A DNA stretch of 64,000 bases from assembly GCA_950097015.1 (NCBI GenBank), contig CATNEN010000001.1:8370001-8434000 (forward strand). Direction: 5' to 3'. Every line of letters starts with the position of its first letter. Position 1 is the first letter of the stretch. Position numbers and translations under genes: made by a program. The notes below the pieces were generated by a model. That model did no database searches. It saw only the letters and a program-made list of their open reading frames with translations, and had not been told where the DNA came from. Below are positions 5,820 to 64,000 of this stretch, one piece after another. The stretch is from Macrostomum hystrix. Taxonomy: Eukaryota > Animalia > Platyhelminthes.

Positions 5820-6777
5820 AATAATTCAACCCGTTCGATAATACACTAACCCTTTCTATACATAATGCTACCCCCTTAATAATTCATGCAAGCCAGTTGA
5901 ACAATAATTTTACCCTTTGATAATTAATGCTTCCCCTCGATAATTCATGCATTCCCCTCAATAATTTATTCTTCTCGATAATTCATGCTTCCCCTCGAAA
6001 ATTCATGCTCCTTGCTCGAAAATGCATGGTACCCTCGATAATTTATTCTTTTCCCTCGATATATCATGTTTCCTCTTCGATAATTCATGCTTTCCGTCGA
6101 TAAATTATTATTGCCCTGGATATTTCACGCTTTCCTTTTCGAGAATCAATGCTTCTCCATCGATATATCATGCTTTTTCATCGATAATTCATACTTCCCA
6201 ATCAATAATTAATGTTTTTCTTTAATAATTCATGCCATTTCATCGATGATACATGCTCTCCATCGATATTTCGATATTTCATCCTCCATTGTCGACAATT
6301 CATGCTACCCATTTGATAATTCATCCTTTTCCCTCGCTTTATCATGCTTTCCCTCTCGATAGTTCATGCTACCCAATTGAAAATAAATTGTTTTTTTCTT
6401 CAATAATTCATGGCACATCGTCGATATTTTTTGCTTTCTCTTTGATTATCTATGTTTTACCCTTAATAATTCATGCTACCACTTTGTTATATCATGCTAT
6501 CCCTGGACAAATCTTGCTTCCCGCTGAATAATTTATGCCATCCACTCAATTTATGCTTTTCCCACGATAATTCAGCCTACCCCGTTGATAACTCATGCTT
6601 CGCCCTTAATAATTCATGCTACCCTCTCGATAAGTCATGTTTTACAATCGATAATTCATGCTTTTCACTCGCTGCATCATGCTTCCCCTGAATAATTTAT
6701 AGTTTCCCTCCGTTAATTCATGTTTCCATCGTGATAATTCATGCATAACCTCAATTTTTTATTCTACCCCACTATAA
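5820..6777. repeat. Old degenerate ~20-bp satellite (tcgataattcatgctt-like), left part
   Basis: Recurrent gataattcatgc motif; the same array resumes at 16786 after the EnSpm element. Confidence 0.85.
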
Positions 6778-7757
6778 CCCGTATAGAAAAATGACGGTCA
6801 CAAAAAAGTTGTGACCGTCGTTTTGTAACCGTGCTGTGACCGTACTGTGTGACCGTAAGGGTCAACTAGTGACCGTGCCCCGAGACGCTTTTGACCGTGG
6901 AATGTGACCGTCCATGGTCACAATAGATGAAATCAGAAAAAGTCTGTTACCATAAAATGTGACCGTGTAATGTTACCGACAACTGTGACCGTACCGTGAC
7001 CGTCAAATGTGACCGTGTAATGTGACCGTCAACTGTGACCATTCCGTGACCGTGTAATGTGACCGTCAACTGTGACCGTTCAGTGACCGTCAATTGTGAC
7101 CGTGTTATGTGACCGTCAACTGTGACCATCAACTGTGATCGTTGCTTGACAGTCAATTGTGACCGTAACGTGATCGCGAACTGATATGACCTATCTGACA
7201 CGTGAATATACGGCTCAGTTTCTTATCACCGGGAAGAGGAAAACGCGAAGTCGAAGTCGAGAAAATTTAATATTTAATAAAATTTAATAACAGCTGAGAT
7301 TGTAAGTTAAGGAAGAAAGGTTTTTGATGATTTTTATAAGAGAAATTGAAAAGCGGAGTACAAATTGATATAATATAATACAAGGCAAATCTGAGCAAAA
7401 CCGCCCAAGTACTGATAGTATTTGGCAATTGTAAATTTGTAAGATTGTAAATTGGCAAATGGCAATTGTCGCACCAGTAACAAACGCATCTAGTGTATAC
7501 ATGGCAATAAGAAAAGAATGCAACTGTACTACTAGCGCCAGCTGGCGTATACATGGCCAATGGAAATGCAACTACTAGCGCCACCTGGCGTATACAGGGC
7601 CAATAAGAATGCCAATAGCAATAGGGACCATACGGAATGCTCAACGTAACTGATGTGTCCAACCTGCTGTGAAGCACTCCAATTCCCTCCCGTATAGAAA
7701 ATTTACGGTCATAAAAAAACTTTGTGTGCATCGCTGTGTCAGAAATAGGTGTCACTA

Positions 7758-9388
7758 CTAGGTGTCAACATGGACTGACGCAATGGAAGCCGCTTGCTCG
7801 ACAAACTCCAGGCTTCCTGCTCCAGGACCCGAAGCAGCGGTAGCTGAACTCGAGGCAGCGGCAGAACCAGCAGAGGCAGTGGAGGCAGCGATAGAATCAG
7901 GGGCAGCAGCATCAGCAGCAGCCCGTTTCCTCTTCTTGCCCTGCCGGCTCCCTGCCTGAGTTTCTTTAGGATCGTGTTTGCGCTTCTCGCAGTAGGCGGT
8001 GCCCTTGAAAACTGTCGACCACGTTCCCTGTGGGATCTTAACAGGCAGGTTAAGACGTTTAATAAAGCCTTCAATGGCTCTTTTCTTTTCGGAAGGCACA
8101 GCGGGCTTCGCCTTATCGAATAGACGTTTTGTTTTCCGACCCGTGTAGGAGCAGGTTAGAAGCTCCTCTGTGCTGAACACAGATTTAAACAGCGTGCGAA
8201 GCAGTCCCATTGCATCACCTTTTTGAAAGCCTGCGCGTATTTTCGCGACATTTGTCGAATTGACGCATATTCCTCCTCGCCGACGGTGACGTCAGGACTC
8301 CTCGCGCTCAAGACAATACGCCTTTCGGCGGCATCAGCCGCTTGCAGCACCCAGGCGGCAGCAACGCTGGAAGCCAAATCTGCGTCATTCTCCGCCGACA
8401 ATGTCATGGCGTCGTCACCGCAATTCAGTGCGTTGGTTGTTCGCCGATTGGCGCATAGAGGAAGAGGTGGAATGGCCGATATTTGGATGCTTAGAACATC
8501 TCGAGCTATTGTAGAAGCTGCACGGCCCGCTGCTGACGCACCTTGGGCAACTGCAGTCTGCAGCAACTCAACAGCAGCGACCACCGCATCTTGAAGTTCT
8601 GCTGTGTACCGACGCGTGTCAATATCCGCACGTGAAACAGTAGCTGGTTGGCTTCCAGCTCCGTTTTCAGTTCCAGCTGCAGCGAAAACACGTGCCAGTT
8701 CCTTGCTAAGTTCCGCAATTTTGCGCTCTGCTGACTCGCTCTTCTCCTTGTACACTTGACACTCCTGACGAGCTTCCTCTAGCTGGCTATCCAGAGAGTC
8801 AACCTGTCTCCGTCTGCTCTCCCGCTCCTCGTCGCCACTGGCCAGCTGGATGTCCACAATCGCACGCTGCGAGGCCAACTCCTGCCATAGGGAGGTGCAC
8901 GTGGAGCACCCGTTTGGTAGATTAATGCCAGTGTTGTGCCCTGGCAAACAAGAGTTCACGCGCGACTCAGCAGCCATCTTGGTTTTATAGGGCCCTTTGA
9001 CGATACGAACTCGGTACACTTTGCTGCCAGCCTTTCCCGGCCGAATGGTGACAATTTCGTCCACCGACAAATGGCTAATGTCAGTATGTGAGTCGGTTAC
9101 GATGCTCTTATCGGAATAGACACCCAGCATGCCGCCGTCCTCCTCTGTATACTCAAAAACCCAAAAACGGGCTACGCATTTCCCTGGCGCTGACTTCGCA
9201 GTCGCTGACGCTGACTTCGCCACTGGTGGCGCTGACCTCGCCGTCGCTGGCGCTGACCTCACCGTCGGTGGCGCTGACTTCGCCATCGGTGGCGCTGACT
9301 TCGCCGTCGCTGGCGCTGACTTCGGATTACTGTTACTACTCATCGAGTAATTGACCAGTATGATAAATATGAGTAGGATTGCTGCCAC
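7758..9388 (-). CDS. Transposon accessory protein: SAP repeats, CxxC, coiled coil, C-terminal BEN domain (one frameshift near 8220)
   Basis: 410-aa ORF plus overlapping 150-aa ORF. Adding one A to the A5 run joins them (AFKK-GDAMGLLRTLFKSVFSTEELLTCSYTG...KKRAIEGFIKR), which fits the BEN pattern LxxxFxxEEL...SxxG. Start may be Met at 9343. Confidence 0.75.
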
Positions 9389-47000: not shown

Positions 47001-50000
47001 TTCAAGATGGTAATGACCAAAAAATTACTATTATCTTATATAAACGTAAATAAAACTATCAAAAGAAAAGACAAAGTGAGTAAATCGTATTGTTAGCATT
47101 GAACACACTTACCTGTGCACAATATCCTTCTCCTTATGCAAGTACCTCAGCGCCAATACAATCTGTACAAATATGTACCAGACTCGATCCTCATCAAAGC
47201 GGAGACCTTTTTCGCGCATAGAGACGAAAAATTCCATTAACGAAGCGCCCTCAATTAGTTCCATGACGATGTAGAGCTTGTCATCTGGATGGTTGAAAAA
47301 ATAGCTTTCAATTTTACCATAGAATTTATAATTGTAGAAAATTAAATATAATCATGTAAAGCTAAGTGCGTTACTTATAGAAGGCTAGTTATGGTTTATT
47401 AGCTCGTATTTAAAATCAAAGTAAAGCGCTCCTTTTCTTTACGGCCAAAACATGCCACAATATCCTATCTAGGAAATATATAAATACTCGTACTATAAAT
47501 TTAGCTGTATTTTCTAGGAAATATATAAATACTCGTAATATAAATTTAGCTGTATTTTCTAGGAAATATATAAATACTCGTACTATAAATTTTGCAGTAT
47601 TTTCTAGGAAATATATAAATACTCGTACTATAAATTTAGATGTAATTTCTAGGAAATATGTAAATACTCGTACTATAAATTTAGATGTATTTTCTAGGAA
47701 ATATATAAATACTCGTACTATAAATTTAGATGTATTTTCTAGGAAATATATAAATACTCGTACTATAAATTTAGCAGTATTTTCTAGGAAATATATAAAT
47801 ACTCGTACTATAAATTTAGCTGTATTTTCTAGGAAATATATAAATACTCGTACTATAAATTTAGCTGTATTTTCTAGGAAATATATAAATACTCGTACTA
47901 TAAATTTTGCAGTATTTTCTAGGAAATATATAAATACTCGTACTATAAATTTAGATGTATTTTCTAGGAAATATATAAATACTCGTACTATAAATTTAGC
48001 TGTATTTTCTAGGAAATATATAAATACTCGTACTATAAATTAAGCATGATACATGATTTTCGTTCGAAGTGTAATACGAATACACTATAATTGATTAATA
48101 AAGATTCGAACCAACGACCTTCCAAACACGATGCATTGGCAACTCACTCTCTTCGAATGTTTTGTAATAGCGAACAATATTCGGATGCCTCAGATGCTCC
48201 TTGGCCATTGTGAGTTCGCTGACAATGTAGCCAACATTTTTCTGACGCTCGTTCGCATTGCGACCCAGGCCGCCTGTATTTAACTCTTTGATGGCGTACA
48301 TCGTCTCCTGTTTGCGAACTTTGTACACCGTGCCAAATGCGCCGCTGCCCAGAATTTCTAACACGGCGTAATCTTTGATGTGCTGCGTGGCTTCGCGATT
48401 CTGATTCACCGATTCTAGGTTCAGGCGCAGCTCTTGGGCCAGCTCTTCGTCCTGAGGGGAGAGCCGGCTAGGAATGACTTTGCTGAGAGGGTACTAGTAC
48501 ACTGTCTCATCTCTCCCGTGTCTCATCTCTCCCGTGTCTCATTTCTCCCGTGTCTCATCTCTCCCGTGTCTCATCTCTCCCGTGTCTCATTTCTCCCGTG
48601 TCTCATCTCTCCCGTGTCTCATCTCTCCCGTGTCTCATCTCTCCCGTGTCTCATCTCTCCCGTGTCTCATCTCTCCCGTGTCTCATCTCTCCCGTGTCTC
48701 ATTTCTCCCGTGTCTCATCTCTCCCGTGTCTCATCTCTCCCGTGTCTCATCTCTCCCGTGTCTCATCTCTCCCGTGTCTCATCTCTCCCGTGTCTCATCT
48801 CTCCCGTGTCTCATCTCTCCCGTGTCTCATCTCTCCCGTGTCTCATTTCTCCCGTGTCTCATCTCTCCCGTGTCTCATCTCTCCCGTGTCTCATCTCTCC
48901 CGTGTTTCATCTCTCCCGTGTCTTATCTCTCTTGTGTCTCATCTCTCCCGTGTCTCATCTCTCCATAGTCCATCTGTTGCTTTCGCATTAATACTCGTAC
49001 TATTAGGGCACGGGGCAGGGGGTCAGTGGCAGAGCAATTAAAGCGTTTGCCTCTCGCACGAAGGTCCCTGAGCTCTATTCCGCGGCAAGGCCATATTTAT
49101 ATGGAACTTGTCTTGCAATTTACGCCGTTTGAGGGACAATCTCCAAGGCACAGTGAGAGTGTACACTGCCTGACGATGAGAAAGAAGTCTGAGCGTATGC
49201 CTAGGTACAGTATCTGTGTGCGTGTGTGCTCAAGAGTCAACGGAATGGGGAGAATTGCCTCCTGGTTGGCTGAGGGTCTAGTGTCACCAAATAAAGCGCC
49301 ATTGTCCGCAGCCCTCCTGTAGTTATTATTATTAAGGGACAGGGGGCTGTAGTATAAACGATAACAGAACACAGGCGGAGCAGTTGTACTCATAGAATAG
49401 CGCACTTACCCTATCAATAGCGGCTACAACTGTGGCATAAGCTGCCAGGTCTCGATTATAGTGGCCAATATCAATGAATGTGGCCAGCAAGCCAGTTGGT
49501 AATAATTTTTTAACAGCTCGGCGATTTCTTTCCAAACTGAACAGAAATCTCAGCGCTCTGCAGGCATTCTTTCTTAGAGTGACAGCACCGTCAGCAACCC
49601 GCTGACTGCCCTCAGTGCTGGCTGACGATGGCGCATTGTTAGCTGCTGATGAACTACCATAATGACAGGCCTGATTGGGTGGCAGCAATAGACGGCCTAA
49701 CAGATAGACGCCATTGTTTTGAGCAACTAGAAATGAATTCCGATCGTCCAGTAGCAGCTCAGTAAGGGCGCAGCAGGCTGCTGAACGCACGTTCAAAGTT
49801 AATTGGGCCTGAAAATAAAAAATGATTATCCAAATCTTTCTAAACAATGATTCTAGATCAGTTTATACACGTGTATATCTGACACATTCTACATTGAGGT
49901 TGTCATGGCAAAGCCGCGCATATTGACGTGAAAAACACCGGAAAAAATAATACTCCGAGCTATTATAACACCGGAAAACTAACGGATATCCAAGAAAATG

Positions 50001-52574
50001 TTCCTCATTAGATTTAAAGTGTATGTTTCGGCTAAAAACCAGCATCATAAACTTTTTCTAAACAACGTGGCTTCCCGTCCTTCTACTCGTCAGTGGTCCA
50101 CGTGTAAATATTAAACAGTACTAAAAGTATTAATATATTCATGAGGTTGAAGCCTTGTGGTTAGAGCCTCAATTTGATTCCCGACTTCTTTATAGAATAT
50201 TTTTAGCATTTTGCAGGACACATAAAGCTGCATTGCTTCAGTTCACCCAGCTGTTAAATGAATGCCAGCAATAGCTGGGGGTATTTGAGTGTTAGCTGTG
50301 GAGTCCCCCCAGTCCATGGACTGAGCAGCCGTACGCAGCCTTCAAATGCGCTCTGCAATAGCTGCGGCTGTGCTGTCGGCTGCACATCTGGCCCGATTGG
50401 GACAGGTGCAATTTTTTTATTAAAAGAAAAAATTACCTAATGAAGAAAAACTCCACAAGTAGTATATTTGACCAGCCGCAGCTATTGCACTGCGTGTACA
50501 TGGCTGTTCAGTCCAATCAGGAATAGTTTTTACTCAAACGACTGAGCTAGGCATAGGCGCGCGTCTAAGTTTTTGCGAGTGATCAAAATGTATTAAAAAC
50601 AATTGAATTACCTGGTCCTCCGTAATACCATCTTCGGAATCAGCGTCTTCATTAGGCACCAATAGAGCCAGGATCAAAGGCACGCCGCCCAGGGCGCGAA
50701 CTTCGCACCTCACACCAGCATCCTCGGCTAGCTGAATCAGGCACCAGAGCGCATTCCAAGCCAGTTTGACATCGTCCGAACCGGTTAGATTCACTAACAA
50801 CGCGACTCCGTCCAGATCGGACACAGCTGTTCTAATGGACGAGTCGGATAGCAACAAGCGAAGCAGATTCACAGCCAGACGCTTGGACTGAGTATCGTAG
50901 CGATCGATAATAGCCAAGATCTGTTCGGCTAGCGACTCCGGCTTGACGCCGCCGCTGCCGCCGCCGCGCAGCATCTGCCTAGGCGACTCCTGCTGGGCCA
51001 ATGAGGCTAGGGCATGCAGTGAGCAGTGCAGAGTTGCCGAATCGTTGGCCGATAGCAGATGAACTAGAGACACGTGTACCTGCGGCGAGAGTAGGACACA
51101 ACTGTTAGATCATCATAACAGTAATGTTTGAAGACCCGCAGCCATCTAGCAGGCAATTATACTCATTCAGCTGACACCTAAGCGCGCCAGAGCATTTCGT
51201 ATACTACTTATTGTCTCATCTCTCTCCTTCAGAATCTTGATTGACGACTTCTAGAATATTAGTATCAAGGATATAAATAATTTATTGCAGGAGGGCTGCG
51301 GGACACTAGACCTGCAGCCAGCGAGGAAGCAATTCTGCCCATTCCGCTGACTCCTGAGCACACGAGCACAGAGGTGAAGTACGTCTGCTATGACTTTCTC
51401 ATCGTCATGCAGTGTACACCCTCACTGTGCCTTAAAGGTTGGCCCTGAAGGGAGTTCATTACACGACAATGAATGTGGCATTGTCGCGAAATGCGAAAGA
51501 CAAACGCTTTAGACCGCTCTGCCACTGACCCACTAGTAATCCGGGATTCAATAACATATAATCTGCCTCTGACCCACTAGTAATCCGGGATTCAATCACA
51601 TATAATCTGCCTCTGAGCCACTAGTAATCCGGGATTCAATCACATATAATCTGCCACTGACCCACTAGTAATCCGGGATTCAATCACATAAAATCTGCCA
51701 CTGACCCACTAGTAATCCGGGATTCAATCACATAAAATCTGCCACTGACCCACTAGTAATCCGGGATTCAATCACATAAAATCTGCCACTGACCCACTAG
51801 TAATCCGGGATTCAATCACATATAATCCAGAAATCAGAAGCTCGCTGACCTGCAGTTTTAAGAAGGTCTCCTTCCCAGTGCCGGCTGCGGAGCTGTGACT
51901 GGGGCAGGTGATGAGCTTCTGAAAGACGTTGCAGAACTCGCGCACAATGTCTAGCATGTGCGGAGTGTCGCCGTGAATCAGGTAACTTTCAGTCGCTAAT
52001 TTCAAAGCCTTGGCCAAGCATTCAACAGCTTCAGCATCTTCCAGACACCGGCGCTGCATGTAGCGATCGCGCAGGAGAATCCTGAGAGCACCAAGCAGGC
52101 CAAGCAGAGTGTCAGGTTGAGCCTCGGACATCCACGAGTCAGATTTCACTCGGCGGGATAGAAGCAGGTCCAGCAGACGCGAGGCGGCATGATTTGGGCC
52201 GAAGCGCCGCTCGTTTCGATGCGCCTGACAGAACAGATGCCAGAGCTCGGCCTCCTGCTGGTCGTGGGCGCTGGCGCGCGGACTGGCTAGCGGCCATGGA
52301 CTGGCTGGAACCGGTTTGGCGCCAACAGTTGGCTGGCTGGAGCGACGATTTTCGCGCGAGCTTTGTCTCTCTAAGCTAGGGGGCTGCTGCTGCTGCTGGG
52401 AGGTGACGGATGTTATTGGCAGCGGAAGCGACTTTTCCAACAGAAAAAGCAGCTCTCGAATTGGGTTTCTGTTTTTGATTGATAAAGATGAAATAAAATT
52501 TCATTTAATAATTAAACTTATAATAAAAAAAACTAGATAACTCACTGCTCAAATGTTGCATCTTCACTAGACAT
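43949..52574 (-). CDS. NEK10: NIMA-related kinase 10 (ARM repeats plus central kinase), 9 exons, 1113 aa
   Basis: Exons 52574-52546, 52468-51850, 51079-50612, 49808-49410, 48451-48148, 47284-47113, 46479-46164, 45825-45106, 44263-43949; in phase (3342 nt). RALRFLFSLERNR, FIDIGHY, LGSGAFGTVYKV, HRDLSPNNIMLG, DFGLAKQK, RVRQISDPI. Confidence 0.94.
44361..45052. repeat. 20-bp intronic minisatellite (agaatgttctatcaatctgc)
   Basis: Tandem array in NEK10 intron 8. Confidence 0.95.
45905..46010. repeat. 18-bp intronic minisatellite (gttaacttcagctaattc)
   Basis: About 6 units in NEK10 intron 7. Confidence 0.9.
46520..47020. repeat. 35-bp intronic minisatellite (gatgttaatgaccggataaatgactgctgtttgag)
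   Basis: Tandem array in NEK10 intron 6. Confidence 0.93.
47468..48041. repeat. 45-bp AT-rich intronic minisatellite
   Basis: ctaggaaatatataaatactcgtactataaatttagctgtatttt, about 13 units, NEK10 intron 5. Confidence 0.95.
48503..48965. repeat. 16-bp minisatellite (tgtctcatctctcccg)
   Basis: NEK10 intron 4; same family as 22473-24070. Confidence 0.95.
49020..49333 (+). mobile_element. SINE family A, near full length
   Basis: tRNA-like head, shared body, gcagccctcctg-(TTA)n end. Confidence 0.9.
50150..50410 (+). mobile_element. SINE family B, degenerate
   Basis: gcattgcttcagttcacccagctg and gctgcggctgtgctgtcggctgcac...ctggcccgattgg shared with 57490-57690. Confidence 0.7.
51280..51531 (-). 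mobile_element. SINE family A
   Basis: Reverse complement of the 49020 copy, ending ...ctctgccactgaccc. Confidence 0.88.
51519..51826. repeat. 44-bp minisatellite built on the SINE/flank junction
   Basis: ctgccactgacccactagtaatccgggattcaatcacatataat, about 7 units. Confidence 0.93.
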
Positions 52575-55878: not shown

Positions 55879-58800
55879 ATGTTCGGCAGCAATCCATTTG
55901 GCAAACCTGCCACCCCAGTGCAGCCAACTGCTGGAAGCAGTCTGTTTGGCAGTCCATCAGCAGCTGGCAGCTCCACCAACTCAACCGGTCTGTTTGGCGC
56001 CGCAGCCAGACCTGGCGGCCTGCTATCTAGCCCAGCCGGCTCCACCTTCGGCATGATGCAGCCAAATGTTGGCCTGCAACAGCAGACTTCTGTTGTGCCC
56101 GGCTCTTCCAGTGTGACATTTGGCGGCGCTGGAACTGCTGGCGGCGCTGGAACTGGCAGCATATTTGGCGCATCTGGCGGGTTTGGTGCCACTGGCAGCA
56201 TGGGCATGTCCAGTAGTCTTGGCGCCACCGGAGTCGGTTCAATTGTTGGTGGCTCTAGACCGTCTTTTAATCCACCAATTAGTACAGAGAGTTCTACGCA
56301 GGTAAAAACATGCTTGGTATTGATTTAGTCTATTCGAACTCTTTTTTGAGTATCAAATCGCAAATTTTTCGATACATATCGGGTAAATGTCGTCTAAATT
56401 TTGTGTACAGTGTTTTGTGAGGTTAATCCTCTAGGGTGCAAATTGCACTTAAAGCCTTCTCTCCGCGGCTGCGCCCAAAATGAATGTGGCCTCGCCGAGC
56501 TCGGGGACCTTAGTGCGAGAAACAAACTCGTTAGACCGCTCTGCCACTTACCTCTAACAGGCTTTCAATTTGGTTCTTGATTAAGTTTTTCTATACATAT
56601 CGGACAAATATGGTAAACCCCTTGTGGCAGTGTCCCTCATATTTTAGTTATTCAAAAATTGTTTTGGACCAAGAATTTTGTTTAAAAAGTTTTCTATACA
56701 TATAGGATAAATATAGTAAAAGCCTTGTGGCAGTGTGTCCCTCATATTTTTAGTTATTCAAAAATTGTTTTGGACCAAGAATTTTGTTTAAAAAGTTTTC
56801 TTTACATATAGGATAGACACTCCACTATCAAATTTGTTCAGGCAAAGGGCGGCGCTCAGCAGACCGTGAACACTAAGCACATGGTGATCACCGCTATGAA
56901 AGAATATCAGGCCGGCAGCCTTGAGGAATTGCGCTCGGAAGACTACGCCGCTGGTAGGCGGGGTCCGCAATCCGTTGTCGGATCCGCCGGTGGAGTTGGC
57001 ATGTTCGGCGCTTCCTCTGTGCAGCCAGCGTCAGCCGCCGCGCCCGCTGTTGGAAGCCTGTTCGGCAGCGGGGCCGGCACAGGTGGTCTGTTTGGTAGCG
57101 GCGCCGGTGCTAGCAATCCAGGCGCTGCTAAGCCGTTCGGCGCAGCCACATCCGCCGTACCGACTTTCGGTAGCGTGGCATCGTCGACCGCTACTCAGAA
57201 TGTCGGCGGCGGGGGCCTATTCGGCTTCAATGCCGGAGCATCTTCAACTGTCGGCTCTACGGGCACTGGCGCCGGCGGACTATTTGGCGCCTCATCCGCC
57301 GCGGGAGCTGCTAAGCCTACCGGATTTGCATTCGGCTCAACTGCTAGTCAGCCAACTTCAGTAAGCGAATAAGATGACGAGGAATCTTTAACTTGTATTA
57401 TAGTCATACTGACTCTCGCCGTTTACCTAAAAAAGGACTAGGCGCTGATCATTCTGCACTAATTATAAAGAAGAATGATGACATCTGCCCTGGTTTTAGC
57501 CTAGTGGTTAGAGCGTTGGACTCACGACGTGAAGGTCGGTGGTTCGATTCTCGAATCCACGAAGCATTTCTTTCCCTTAACAAGACACTTAACTGAGCAT
57601 TGCTTCAGTTCACCCAGCTGTACCAGCATCAGCTGCGGCTGTGCTGTCGGCTGCACACCTGGCCCGATTGGAGCAGATGTAGTCAAATTTTTATAATTAT
57701 TACTGTGCCTTCAAGGTTGGCCCTCAAAGGCGCTAATTGCACGACAAACCCCCAAGTCTTCTCCGTGGCGGCGTGGCCTCGCCGCAGAATTAAGAGAGGC
57801 AAACTTGTCTGACCGCTCTGCTACGCACTTAAGCCCTTTCTCAGCCCCCATTCTAGTGTTATTTCTCCATGCCTTCGCAGGTCGCAGCTCCGGTCTCGGG
57901 TACCACCTCGCTATTTGGCGGCGCCGCAGCTGGCGGAGGCCTGTTTGGTTCGTCGGCGGCCAACGCGGCTAAGCCGAGTCCGTTTTCGTTCGGCGCATCG
58001 ACTGGAGTGTCGACCGCTTCGGCCACTCCGGCAGCCGGCTCGGCGTTCGGTTTCGGCGCTCCCACAGGTGCCACCGGTGGTGGCCTGTTCGGTGGTGCTG
58101 CTAATGCCGCTAAACCGTTCGCATTTGGCGCATCAACTGGCACCGCGCCTGGCACTTCCACAGCTTCTGGCGGCTCGTTCTTTGGCGCCCCGGCGGCTGC
58201 TCCGAATGTCTCAGCTGCGCCTGGTGGTGGCCTCTTCGGCGGCGGCGGCGGTGCCTTTGGCTCCACAGCGGTATGTCATTGCGACATCCTGTTCCAGACC
58301 CCCTTTCCCAGATGCTCACTCACCCACTTTCTCAAAGACTCAAATCATTTCCCGCACCCTCAGATTCTGTCCTGCACCCTCAGATTCTGTCCTACACCCT
58401 CAGATTCTGTCCTACACCCTCAGATTCTGTCCTGCACCCTCAGATTCTGTCCTCCACCCTCAGATTCTGTCCTACACCCTCAGATTCTGTCCTGCACCCT
58501 CAGATTCTGTCCTACATGCACCCTCAGATTCTGTCCTACACCATCAGACTCTGTCCTGCACCCTCAGATTCTGTCCTCCACCCTCAGATTCTGTCCTCCA
58601 CCCTCAAATTATTTCCTACACCCTCAGATTCTGTCCCACAACCTCAGATTCTGCCCCACACCCTCAGATTCTGTCCTACACCCTCAGATTCTGTCCCACA
58701 CCCTCAGATTCTGTCCTACACCCTCAGATTCTGTCCTACACCCTCAGATTCTGTCCTACACCCTCAGATTCTGTCCTACACCCTCAGATTCTGTCCTACA

Positions 58801-60659
58801 CCCTCAGATTCTGTCCTACACCCTCAGATTCTGTCCCTCACCCTCAGATTCTGTCCCACACCCTCAGATTCTGTCCCTCACCCTCAGATTCTGTCCCACA
58901 CCCTCAGATTCTGTCCCTCACCCTCAGATTCTGTCCCACACCCTCAGATTCTGTCCCACACCCTCAGATTCTGTCCTACACCCTCAGATTCTGTCCCACA
59001 CCCTCAGATTCTGTCCTCCACCCTCAAATTATTTCCTACACCCTGAGATTCTGTCCTTCACCCTCTGTTTCCCCCACAGCCAAAACCTCTATTCGGCGCC
59101 ACCCAGCCGTCAACCGGTCTGACGCAGCTCGGCTTCGGCTCAGTCGGCGGCTCCGCAGGAGGTTCTGCTGCGCCTTCTTCCGTTGGGGGCGCATTCGGAT
59201 TCAATCTGCAGAACACAGGCCAAGGTGTTGGTGGCGGCGGCATGTTGCTAGGCCAGACTCCATTCCAGTCTAGTCTGCAATCAACAGTTGGTCAGCCCGG
59301 TGCATCGCTGATGCAGCAACCGTTTCAATTGAATCAGCCTTCTCTATTGGGTAATACAACTGGAGCTGGTGCTGCGCAAATGTCAATTGGATTGAGTGCC
59401 AATCACGACGAGGCACTCTTGCAGCAGGCTAGGGTGCAACAGCAGGTATGAATTCGAAAAAATTATTTGGGTCTGTTGGGTCCTGGTATTATCCTTAGCT
59501 TATTTAATCTAGGTATCCGGTTTTAATATTTAATTTTTAAGCTTTTCAGTCCGTAGTTCCATGTGTTTTTGGTCTATAGTTTCGTTTTTTTAGTCAGTAG
59601 TTTCGTGTTTTTCGGTCTGTAGATTCGGGTTTTTCGGTGTGTAGTTTCGGGTTTTTCGGTCTGTAGTTTCGGGTTTTTCGGTCAGTACTTTCGGGTTCTT
59701 TTGGTCAGTAGATTCGGGTTTTTCGGTCTCTAGTTTCGGGTTTTTCGGTCAGTAGTTTCGGGTTTTTCGGTGTGTAGTTTCGGGTTTTTCGGTCAGTAGA
59801 TTCGGGTTTTTTCGGTCAGTGATTCGGGTTTTTCGGTCAGTAGATTCGGGTTTTTCGGTCAGTAGATTCGGGTTTTTCGGTCAGTAGATTCGGGTTTTTT
59901 CGGTCAGTAGATTCGGGTTATTCAGTATAGTGATTAGGTTTCTAGTGATTTATTGTTCAACAAACTAATTTCATTATAATTCCCCAGGTGCTAGACCTGG
60001 TGCAAACTCTACCATACGGGACAGCTCACCTATCTCGCCAATTGTCGTCAAGCACATCGTCTGCGGCTAGCAGTTTAAATCCAATCGCCAGTTTTGGTCC
60101 CTATTCGCCAGTGTCGGCCTACAATTATTACGCCGCATCATCGTCCAATAGCCGGTATCAGAACAGCCAGCAGCAGCAGCAGCAGCAGCAGTACATGCTG
60201 CCAGTTGCTACACAGCGCGCCCTAGCAAATGCAACTAATTTCACGCCAAACTTTTCAATGGGCGTGTCGCCTAAACCAGCTGGCAAAGGCTCACCTCTAG
60301 CCAGACCAATTCAGGTAGCCAATAGGAAGCAACTGTTTGAAGGCTTTGAACAGTCCGACTCTATGATTGGTCATCAGCATCAACAATCTGTTAATTCTAC
60401 TAGCAACGGTACTGACAATGGGTTGTTTTTCCTTGAGAAATCCAATTGGAAGAAGTTGACATTGCCATCGTCTGTGCTGAGATCTTCTCTAGATTCCGCA
60501 TCTGCTTCGGCTATCGCCGCTTCGGCTACGACTAAAGCTACTGCATCCAATGCTGCCGCTGCTGCTGCTGCAAAATCTAAGTCGCTAAATGATTCACTTG
60601 GTGTCGCTTCACCTGTTGAAAGTGGCCAGCAGCTACCAGATAGCAGTAGTGCTATTTAG
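55879..60659 (+). CDS. NUP98: Nucleoporin Nup98 (FG/GLFG repeats plus GLEBS), 5 exons, 789 aa, no autoproteolytic domain visible
   Basis: Exons 55879-56301, 56842-57360, 57881-58270, 59080-59445, 59988-60659; all phase 0. GLFG repeats; GLEBS NTKHMVITAMKEY..SLEELRSEDY; post-FG motifs LPYG, QRAL, LFEG, WKKLTL; TAG at 60657-60659. Confidence 0.92.
56440..56552 (-). mobile_element. SINE family A 5' fragment
   Basis: Inverse of the SINE head, in NUP98 intron 1. Confidence 0.75.
57490..57690 (+). mobile_element. tRNA-derived SINE family B
   Basis: A box TAGCCTAGTGG, B box GGTTCGATTC, then caagacacttaact...cacccagctg core; fragments also at 50150 and ~55520. Confidence 0.8.
57700..57825 (-). mobile_element. 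SINE family A fragment, tail-to-tail with SINE B
   Basis: ctgtgccttcaaggttggccctc...gaccgctctgc. Confidence 0.75.
58355..59062. repeat. 20-bp intronic minisatellite (ccctcagattctgtcctaca)
   Basis: NUP98 intron 3. Confidence 0.95.
59580..59925. repeat. ~20-bp intronic minisatellite (agtagattcgggtttttcggtc-like)
   Basis: NUP98 intron 4. Confidence 0.92.
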
Positions 60660-60820
60660 GTCCCAATGGAACGTTGCCAACTAGAAGTCTTTGTTGAATC
60701 TTAAAAGGTTTTAACGAATTTCAAGTTTGGAAAACAAGTTTATACAGACTGTTGTTACTTACCATTCATGTCCATTGAAAAAAGTTAACGATTTTGTTGT
60801 TTTTAAAGCATAAACTGGTT

Positions 60821-61256
60821 CTGACAGGATTCTGTGTCAGTATTCCGGATCTGACAGAATTCTGTGTCAGTATTCCGGATCTGACAGGATTCTGTGTCAG
60901 TATTCCGGATCTGACAGAATTCTGTGTCAGTATTCCGGATCTGACAAAATTCTGTGTCAGTATTCCGGATCTGACAGAATTCTGTGTCAGTATTCCGGAT
61001 CTGACAAAATTCTGTGTCAGTATTCCGGATCTGACAGAATTCTGTGTCAGTATTCCGGATCTGACAGAATTCTGTGTCAGTATTCCGGATCTGACAAAAT
61101 TCTGTGTCAGTATTCCGGATCTGACAGAATTCTGTGTCAGTATTCCGGATCTGACAGAATTCTGTGTCAGTATTCCGGATCTGACAGGATTCTGTGTCAG
61201 TATTCCGGATCTGACAGAATTCTGTGTCAGTATTCCGGATCTGACAGAATTCTGTC
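60821..61256. repeat. 30-bp palindrome-rich minisatellite (ctgacagaattctgtgtcagtattccggat)
   Basis: About 14.5 units. Confidence 0.95.
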
Positions 61257-61260
61257 ATTC

Positions 61261-61918
61261 GAACATGTCAGATCTGTTTTAGTTAAAGTGGCATTGAGTA
61301 GATTAGCCCTGTCAGAACATGTCAGATCTGTATTAGTTAAAGTGGCATTGAGTAGATTAGCCCTGTCAGAACATGTCAGATCTGTATTAGTTAAAGTGGC
61401 ATTGAGTAGATTAGCCCTGTCAGAACATGCCAGATCTGTTTTAGTTAAAGTGGCATTGAGTAGATTAGCTCTGTCAGAACATGTCAGATCTGTTTTAGTT
61501 AAAGTGGCATTGAGTAGATTAGCCCTGTCAGAACATGTCAGATCTGTATTAGTTAAAGTGGCATTGAGTAGATTAGCCCTGTCAGAACATGTCAGATCTG
61601 TTTTAGTTAAAGTGGCATTGAGTAGATTAGCCCTGTCAGAACATGTCAGATCTGTTTTAGTTAAAGTGGCATTGAGTAGATTAGCCCTGTCAGAACATGT
61701 CAGATCTGTTTTAGTTAAAGTGGCATTGAGTAGATTAGCCCTGTCAGAACATGTCAGATCTGTTTTAGTTAAAGTGGCATTGAGTAGATTAGCCCTGTCA
61801 GAACATGTCAGATCTGTTTTAGTTAAAGTGGCATTGAGTAGATTAGCTCTGTCAGAACATGTCAGATCTGTTTTAGTTAAAGTGGCATTGAGTAGATTAG
61901 CTCTGTCAGAACATGTCA
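61261..61918. repeat. 54-bp minisatellite
   Basis: gaacatgtcagatctgttttagttaaagtggcattgagtagattagccctgtca, about 12 units. Confidence 0.95.
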
Positions 61919-62394
61919 TCCTTTTCCAGACAAATAAATTACCTTATAACTCGTAGTTTAGTAATATGCTATGTAATCAACTTGTAATTTTATTTTCTCG
62001 TTGATTGAATTGCCTGTTACCACTGTAATTGTTTTTAAAACACTTCAATTTTCTGTCTTGTGTCACGCTCGATTTAATTTACTATTTGTAACTTTTCTAG
62101 TTCCTGGGTAATTGTGGTGTTTTGAAATTACGCATAAAATTTTCAAAAAAGGATTTAAATACACACTGCATGCATGATGCCGCCCAATTTTCGTTCCAAA
62201 AACAGTTTTATTTTATTGCAGAGTATCAAAGTGTTTTGTTACATTTTTAGTTTACTAAACTAATAAAATATCTAGGTGTAAAAATATCGTTAGTCAAAAG
62301 TAATTTAACAACTTTTTGTAGTGTCTTTACACTTGTTCATCAGTCCACAAGATATGTATGCGTTTCCTTTTCAATTATTATTCACTCCTTTCAC

Positions 62395-63525
62395 TCCAGT
62401 CACTCTTTATTCAGGGTCACTCATCACTCCTCAGTCACTCCTCAGCCACTCTTCAATCATCTCTCCTCAGTCACTCCTCAGCCACTATTCACTCTAGTCT
62501 GTAGTCACTCTTCACTCATCTCTCCTCAGTCACTCCTCAGCCACTATTCACTCTAGTCTGTAGTCACTCTTCACTCATCACTCCTCAGTCACTCCTCAGC
62601 CACTCTTCAATCATCTCTCCTCAGTCACTCCTCAGCCACTATTCACTCTAGTCTGTAGCCACTCTTCACTCATCTCTTCTCAGTCACTCCTCAGCCACTA
62701 TTCACTCCAGTCTGTAGTCACTCTTCACTCATCTCTCCTCAGTCACTCCTCAGCCACTATTCACTCTAGTCTGTAGTCACTCTTCACTCATCTCTCCTCA
62801 GTCACTCCTCAGCCACTATTCACTCTAGTCTGTAGTCACTCTTCACTCATCTCTTTTCAGTCACTCCTCAGCCACTATTCACTCTAGTCTGTAGTCACTC
62901 TTCACTCATCTCTTCTCAGTCACTCCTCAGCCACTATTCACTCTAGTCACTCTTCACTCATCTCTTCTCAGTCACTCCTCAGCCACTATTCACTCTAGTC
63001 ACTCTTCACTCATCTCTTCTCAGTCACTCCTCAGCCACTATTCACTCTAGTCACTCTTTACCCATCACTCCTCAGCCACTATTCACTCTAGTCACTCTTC
63101 ACTCATCTCTTCTGAGTCACTCCTCAGCCACTATTCACTCTAGTCACTCTTCACTCATCTCTTCTCAGTCACTCCTCAGCCACTATTCACTCTAGTCACT
63201 CTTTACTCATCTCTTCTCAGTCACTCCTCAGCCACTATTCACTCTAGTCACTCTTTACCCATCACTCCTCAGTTACTCTTCACTCATCACTCCTCAGCCA
63301 CTCTTCACAATTGTCACTTTTCACTCTTCACTCTTCAGTCACTCCTTATTCACTCTTCACTCTAGTCACTCTTCACTCATCTCTCATCAGTCACTCCTCA
63401 GCCACTATTCACTCTAGTTACTCTTTACCCATCACTCCTCAGCCACTCTTCACAATTGTCACTTTTCACTCTTCACTCTTTAGTCACTCCTCAGTCACTC
63501 TTCCCTCTAGTCACTCTTGACTATT
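62395..63525. repeat. Composite CT-rich satellite (agtcactc/cactcctcag subunits, ~50-58-bp period)
   Basis: Tandem degenerate repeats. Confidence 0.9.
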
Positions 63526-63624
63526 ACCTTAGTCATTGGTCACTATTCAAATTTGTTCAGCTTTCAAATAGACCTGTATCGAAATATTTATAAATATATA
63601 TTATTTATTTATTACGGATTCCAG

Positions 63625-64000
63625 CCACACAGCACTCCAGTATCGACCAACATGCAGCAGCAGCAGCAGCAGTCTCATTCACCCGTCAACTATCAGCGCT
63701 ACTATTTCTATCCTCTGCCTGATGGCACTGTACTACCATGCGTACTACACAATGGTCGCTTGTGCCCGATCGGGCCTCCAATAATCAATAACCAACGCCC
63801 TGTACCTCCGCCGCCGCCGCCACCACCGCCACCGCCTCAGGAGTCAGCTATCACTGCGCCAACTGATCCAACATCCATAGCCTTAGTTAAACAGCTTGGC
63901 CTGAGTGTATCTACCTTGCGCACTATGAAACACGAATTATTTGATAGTTGCACAGCTGACCAATCACTTTGCTCCCCGGCTAAGCTAGCTAGCCAATCGC
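63625..64000 (+). CDS. Exon encoding a Nup96-like N-terminal region; open past the window end
   Basis: Acceptor ttccag| at 63624; ATG at 63652; stop-free frame MQQQQQQSH...PPPPPPPPP...PTSIALVKQLGLSVSTLRTMKHELFD. This resembles the Nup96 motif recalled as IASSLGINPHVLQIMKASL, and it lies directly downstream of NUP98. Confidence 0.7.

Follow-up and report, generated by a model that had tools for sequence, protein, structure and literature searches.

Introduction

In animals and fungi, Nup98 and Nup96 come from one Nup98-Nup96 (Nup145) precursor, in which an autoproteolytic domain (peptidase S59, PF04096) separates Nup98 from Nup96 and docks Nup98 on the pore. The domain is regarded as a fixed feature of the pore in animals and fungi. 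In plants, Nup98 and Nup96 are encoded separately, and Nup98 retains the domain. From yeast to human, processing by autoproteolysis is conserved, and trypanosomes lack it (PMC8421043). In Schizosaccharomyces pombe, expression of Nup98 and Nup96 from two separate loci is tolerated (PMC4483485). We analyzed the Nup98-Nup96 locus of the flatworm Macrostomum hystrix, which begins in a stretch of 64,000 nucleotides (nt) (the window; contig 1, positions 8,370,001-8,434,000). The view was extended past the window end with two segments, termed L004 (window-equivalent 59001-69000) and L005 (window-equivalent 69001-77000).

On the + strand, Nup98 (open reading frame A, ORF A), a second frame (ORF B) and the Nup96 core (ORF C) form a block of three consecutive closed frames, with spacer 1 between ORF A and ORF B and spacer 2 between ORF B and ORF C. 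The locus resembles the animal and fungal precursor in gene order and strand, with an FG/GLEBS-type Nup98 followed by the Nup96 family PF12110, and it is the genome's single locus for both. In contrast to the precursor, it is devoid of peptidase S59, carries two stops and has an extra closed frame of 202 codons between the two parts. It also differs from trypanosomes and from engineered S. pombe, since M. hystrix is an animal, its two genes have stayed next to each other, and the domain as a whole, not just the fusion, appears to be gone. The locus is probably a variant of the Nup98-Nup96 system with the protease missing and the two proteins uncoupled.

The locus was also compared with the trans-spliced operons of Macrostomum. 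About 20% of M. hystrix genes are reported to be trans-spliced (PMC10468722). In M. lignano the trans-splice acceptor motif is [T/C]TNCAG, and operon spacers peak near 100 nt and are <1 kb with repeats subtracted (PMC8629364). The M. hystrix locus shares with these operons same-strand frames, the [T/C]TNCAG motif, a leader ending in AUG and spacers inflated by repeats, with spacer 1 <1 kb after adjustment. In contrast, its cistrons would be fragments of a single ancestral gene, one of its spacers (spacer 2) is >1 kb, and its trans-splicing is predicted from the genome.

On balance, we favour loss of the autoprotease and separate products from the locus, with spliced-leader trans-splicing as the probable route. 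If true, an animal without the domain is a natural experiment on Nup98 anchoring, and the locus is a clear case of a polyprotein turned into separately translated cistrons in a lineage with trans-splicing. Searches of the literature and its supplements gave no paper on Macrostomum Nup98-Nup96 or on flatworms that have lost the domain, and nothing on the Mlig gene ids, on S59 in Schistosoma, or on separate Nup98 and Nup96 genes.

Results and Discussion

The peptidase S59 domain is undetected in the locus and in the assembly

The M. hystrix assembly (PacBio/canu) has 220,453,370 bases in 42 contigs with an N50 of 13.5 Mb, a Merqury quality value (QV) of 42.8 and a BUSCO completeness of 84-85% (PMC10468722). 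Family searches were run exon by exon, and genome profile searches covered all six frames at E≤10. The PF04096 model gave 0 matches over all 220 Mb of genome. It also found none in Nup98 exon 5, ORF B or the first two ORF C exons (hmmscan), or in the frames of spacer 1. These results bear out an earlier reading made from the letters of the window (the sequence-only reading), which had proposed that the autoprotease domain is absent. A comparable genome search picked up Nup96 exon by exon, down to 20.7 bits, and a GLEBS model of 39 positions also returned chance matches at E 1-5, indicating that the genome search is not blind to exon-sized pieces.

Nup98/GLEBS, ORF B and Nup96 are each single-copy in the genome, so there is no intact Nup98-Nup96 paralogue, a possibility that the sequence-only reading had held against its own claim. 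In the genomic sequence, no continuous reading frame leads from Nup98 to Nup96: TAG at 60657-60659 and TAA at window-equivalent 64258-64260 interrupt it, and neither stop is preceded by a suitable donor.

Nup98 closes at a stop codon in exon 5

The part of Nup98 with FG/GLFG repeats and GLEBS is present. The frame starts with MFGSNPFGKP at ATG 55879, downstream of an AT-rich region and a minus-strand gene. Exon 1 (55879-56301, +) carries FG repeats with a weak PF13634 match and is followed by donor GTAAAA at 56302. Exon 2 (56842-57360, +; donor GTAAGC at 57361) holds the GLEBS motif and FG repeats. This GLEBS scored 48 bits with PF21240 by hmmscan and 64.3 bits in the six-frame genome search, in which it was the sole match above the cut-off. 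FG repeats continue in exon 3 (57881-58270, +; donor GTATGT at 58271), and exon 4 (59080-59445, +; donor GTATGA at 59446) was read from the ORF and the sequence. All Nup98 introns are in phase 0. The intron after exon 3 contains a 20-bp minisatellite (58355-59065) and that after exon 4 a 22-bp minisatellite (59543-59923).

Exon 5 (59988-60659, +) is entered through the acceptor ccccag/G in phase 0 (the slash marks the putative junction) and encodes a linker with the motifs KQLFEGF and NWKKLTLP. The sequence-only reading had called LFEG and KKLTL conserved. Both motifs are in exon 5, but neither could be tied to a family, and the exon had no match in Pfam or the Protein Data Bank (PDB). With exon 5 as protein query, no relative was found within the length band searched, and full-length relatives fall outside that scope. 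As had been proposed, the exon runs into its stop (TAG 60657-60659) without a strong donor. Its last 350 nt hold no GTAA, GTAT or GT[AG]AG, and thus none of the GTAAAA/GTAAGC/GTATGT/GTATGA type used upstream. The GT sites near the exon end are GTAGCC, GTACTG, GTAGTG and GTGCTA, and a weak GTCCCA directly follows the stop.

Apart from the exon 2 GLEBS, identical weak matches to the GLEBS model were observed on two other contigs (C10:3200241-3200315 and C33:5128129-5128203). Their identity suggests that the assembly retains a segment that is duplicated or a haplotig.

Spacer 1 consists of three minisatellites and AT-rich DNA

Spacer 1 (60660-63624, +), which may be a 3′ untranslated region, intergenic or intron-like, is 2,965 nt long and shrinks to ∼740 nt after subtracting tandem repeats. 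It contains array 1 (60820-61255; 30 bp repeated 14.5 times), array 2 (61261-61918; 54 bp repeated 12.2 times), array 3 (62417-63547; a 52/59-bp family) and AT-rich DNA. AATAAA occurs at 61933 and 62262. The non-repeat frames of its + strand matched no Pfam family at E≤10 and showed nothing protease-like, which upholds the view that this interval is made of satellites and AT-rich DNA and holds no autoprotease coding. The spacer ends in an acceptor-like TTCCAG (ttccag/CC; 63619-63624, +), and a frame is open from 63625.

ORF B is a closed frame with relatives detected only in Macrostomum

ORF B starts at ATG 63652, in frame and 27 nt past the acceptor-like site at 63625, as the sequence-only reading had noted, and the frame is also open upstream of the ATG, back to the acceptor. 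It is 202 codons long. It occupies 63652-64000 (+) in the window, with 116 of the 202 codons inside, and continues to TAA at window-equivalent 64258-64260 (L004:4652-5260). The end reads ACG CTG CTC AGA TAA caaaac, with the stop at L004:5258-5260, 260 nt beyond the window end. There is no GT at or just after this stop, and no donor of the Nup98 type within the frame.

Searches of two very large protein sets returned two relatives of ORF B only, M. lignano PAA60595.1 (190 aa) and PAA53030.1 (191 aa), and a search of representative proteins gave an M. lignano protein plus low-complexity and bacterial matches only. ORF B is 52% identical to the M. lignano proteins and shares with them the starting Met and the terminal H.SWR..S.TLLR. 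The conserved blocks are YYFYPLP.G.VLPCVL.NG.L.PIG, DP.S.ALVKQLGLS..TL..MK.ELF, WR.AS.S.VAVTCRRP and the C-terminus, with the C-terminal block among the best conserved in the alignment. Conservation up to the stop argues that the frame is coding to its end and that the stop is real and old.

In the M. lignano annotation, transcripts were cut at leader and poly(A) sites and ORFs were then called by TransDecoder (PMC5730564). A gene whose sole coding sequence (CDS) is 190 aa indirectly suggests an mRNA without the Nup98 and Nup96 frames. Reading the "g1" suffix in M. lignano gene names as a position in a transcription unit was considered and dropped, since the g suffix is undefined as an order; the number before ".g" is a cluster prefix common to transcripts at 95% identity (PMC5730564).

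The sequence-only reading had taken the 63625 exon for the start of Nup96, from a "Nup96-type LGL...MK..LF" motif. That assignment was not confirmed. ORF B, its three-sequence profile and the 33-aa segment with the motif gave no Nup96 chain at E≤10 in the PDB sequence set, in which the best matches of the segment are leucine-rich repeats. ORF B had no match in Pfam or the ESM Atlas. An AlphaFold2 prediction from the three-sequence alignment is mostly disordered (mean predicted local distance difference test score, pLDDT, 40), with a short predicted beta hairpin at residues 26-48, predicted helices at 83-106 and 118-132, and no beta-sandwich, indicating that ORF B is not a hidden protease fold. 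Furthermore, the exon closes at its TAA, and PF12110 lies in later exons. With the 63625 exon ending short of PF12110, a model of the locus in two parts no longer holds, and one in three parts takes its place.

The Nup96 core looks intact

Spacer 2, from ORF B to ORF C, is 2,647 nt long and has two further minisatellites. It measures ∼1,750 nt after subtracting tandem repeats only, with dispersed repeats left in. At its end, an acceptor-like ctgcag/CAG at window-equivalent 66908 is followed 24 nt on by an in-frame ATG at 66932. Exon 1 of ORF C encodes SRRVAWGPSGELLAIDGQM and has a GTGTGT donor in phase 0, and exon 2 (TSIKPCPQVHF) joins in frame. The Sec13-blade-like motif RVAWGP lies in ORF C ahead of PF12110, with the ORF C start ∼126 residues before the motif. 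PF12110 was matched in three successive + strand exons (window-equivalent 68363-70123) with 58.9, 133.9 and 20.7 bits. Judged by these sequence matches, the core of Nup96 appears intact. A protein search with the 293-aa Nup96 exon found no relative within the length band covered, full-length relatives being outside its scope.

The first intron of the Nup96 core, the only Nup96 intron whose phase was worked out, is in phase 0. Another feature of the core is an intron array at L005:470-1000 (window-equivalent 69470-70000) of about five tandem units of ∼95 bp each. Each unit ends in the tRNA T-arm-like GGAGTTCGAATC, and the array looks like a tRNA-derived short interspersed nuclear element (SINE).

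Leader copies and acceptor motifs fit trans-splicing of the downstream frames

The M. lignano spliced leader (31-nt core, ending in ATG) has 26 exact copies in the M. hystrix genome and 208 copies within 3 mismatches, when compared with 0 for the reversed control. Tandem arrays of the leader, in which part of the exact copies lie, repeat every ∼11.6-11.7 kb on the small contigs C15, C17 and C42 (e.g., C17:2765-120870), and many dispersed near-copies end in ATA, not ATG.

The motif [T/C]TNCAG fits both TTCCAG before 63625 and CTGCAG before 66908. This is a weak test, since cis acceptors often fit the motif too. Trans-splicing at either 63625 or 66908 would place the leader AUG in frame. When compared with the 1-kb criterion for operon spacers, the repeat-adjusted spacer 1 (∼740 nt) is below and spacer 2 (∼1,750 nt) above. 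The motif fit, the in-frame leader AUG and the size of spacer 1 favour trans-spliced separate products.

In the favoured reading, an ancestral Nup98-Nup96 precursor gene would have lost the peptidase S59 domain in Macrostomum. ORF A would then be a Nup98 without the domain that stops at 60657-60659, ORF B a mostly disordered frame of 202 codons from 63652 to 64260, and ORF C the Nup96 core, from ATG 66932 through RVAWGP to PF12110. Nup98 and Nup96 would be separated by translation termination and initiation of their own, without self-cleavage; since the three frames are closed, the two would be made as separate polypeptides. The downstream frames would most likely gain their 5′ ends by trans-splicing at TTCCAG/63625 and CTGCAG/66908. 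A trans-spliced 5′ end is expected for ORF B and probably for ORF C, and one shared primary transcript is possible. For its place in the pore, Nup98 would depend solely on its linker motifs. The RNA-level uncoupling put forward by the sequence-only reading thus survives in part: separation at the level of RNA or translation is the best reading, with which the leader copies and the 63625 motif fit, and the two-part layout is given up.

The place of the long disordered N-terminus of Nup96, ahead of the Sec13-blade motif, would be taken here by ORF B together with the initial ∼126 residues of ORF C. A Nup96 origin of ORF B could not be shown, this position being the sole argument for it. A bolder version of the proposal, which we regard as possible and hold only tentatively, is that the genus Macrostomum dismantled the otherwise universal opisthokont Nup98-Nup96 polyprotein into three trans-spliced cistrons. 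ORF B would then be a new, free-standing disordered pore protein from the former junction or the Nup96 N-terminal region, and Nup98 would be anchored by short linear motifs alone.

Evidence against trans-spliced separate products, and other explanations

Several points weigh against the reading favoured here. Both spacers are long (2,965 and 2,647 nt), and spacer 2 stays above the 1-kb operon threshold even when adjusted for repeats. The first AATAAA lies 1,273 nt past the Nup98 stop. The TAG/GT at 60660 and the acceptor at 63625 are both in phase 0, as all Nup98 introns, so that spacer 1 looks like a former intron and might still be cis-spliced. The absence of the domain rests on one hidden Markov model (HMM), PF04096, whose first look gave zero candidates, leaving some doubt on its sensitivity, and the assembly is complete to 84-85% by BUSCO. 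The M. lignano Nup98 and Nup96 are beyond the length band of the protein search. Finally, the RNA ends and junctions used, and the anchoring of Nup98 by linker motifs alone, are predictions from genomic sequence.

The phase match bears on two explanations that keep spacer 1 as an intron. One cis-spliced mRNA could use weak donors to give a Nup98-ORF B fusion without the protease domain, leaving the Nup96 core separate. Splicing of GTAGTG at 60646 to the AG at 63639-40, for instance, would start the next exon at 63641 and yield a product closed by the ORF B stop. Such weak donor/acceptor pairs in frame exist, the ORF B frame is open from its ATG back to the acceptor, and the Nup98 introns are in phase 0 and filled with minisatellites, like spacer 1. 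The candidate donors, however, are unlike those used by Nup98, and in M. lignano ORF B is a complete, transcript-annotated CDS of 190 aa from the conserved Met, without preceding Nup98 sequence; we therefore consider this fusion unlikely. Splicing could instead occur at TAG/GT itself (60659 to 63625), and maybe onward, to give a polycistronic mRNA. Reinitiation would then account for translation of ORF B and ORF C, or else the two would be remnants with poor expression. TAG/GTCCCA and ccag/CCA match in phase 0, and the next ATG would lie only 27 nt past the stop, but GTCCCA makes a poor donor. Nonsense-mediated decay is the normal fate of an mRNA with a stop ahead of an exon junction, and reinitiation after a frame of ∼790 codons is inefficient. 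Nup96, in addition, is an essential scaffold protein whose domain is intact here. We find this explanation more doubtful still than the fusion.

Autoprotease exons might also have been lost from the assembly by satellite collapse or a mis-join, or might escape the HMM because they have diverged too far or are split into pieces that are too small. The gap has satellite arrays on its flanks, and both the lack of any PF04096 candidate at the first look and the BUSCO value are compatible with such an artefact. Yet the assembly is built from long PacBio reads, with the contig number, N50 and QV given above, the arrays (0.4-1.1 kb) are far below long-read length and the three differ in sequence. No PF04096 signal was found on any contig, and the independent M. 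lignano annotation starts ORF B at the same Met. Loss of these exons from the assembly is unlikely, and we give the artefact as a whole little credence. Similarly improbable, in our view, is that ORF B is an unrelated, small Macrostomum-specific gene between an independent Nup98 and an independent Nup96, with own promoters and no operon. In its favour, no similarity of ORF B to Nup96, or to any sequence outside Macrostomum, was detected, and the spacers are long, that between ORF B and ORF C above all. Against an unrelated gene, ORF B takes the position expected for the disordered N-terminal region of Nup96, only ∼126 residues separate the ORF C start from the Sec13-blade motif, and no opposite-strand gene breaks the block.

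Flanking genes and repeats

Minus-strand genes lie on both flanks, so that the + strand block holds only Nup98, ORF B and Nup96. Upstream is an armadillo-repeat-like gene (window 49332-52440, -) and downstream a septin-like GTPase (L005:4895-5416 and 6757-7230, -), both putative and read from translation alone. A search of L004 with Rfam gave no match.

Almost every intron or spacer of the block contains a 20-59-bp minisatellite, with a different unit each time. These arrays are located at window positions 58355-59065, 59543-59923 and 60820-63547, at L004:5453-5848 and 7332-7832, and at L005:1725-3734. A short dispersed repeat was observed in two places, at window 49097-49405 (-), with the translation GDTRPSANQEAILPIPL, and inside spacer 2 at L004:6421-6531 (+), with the translation RDTRPAASEEAILPIPL.

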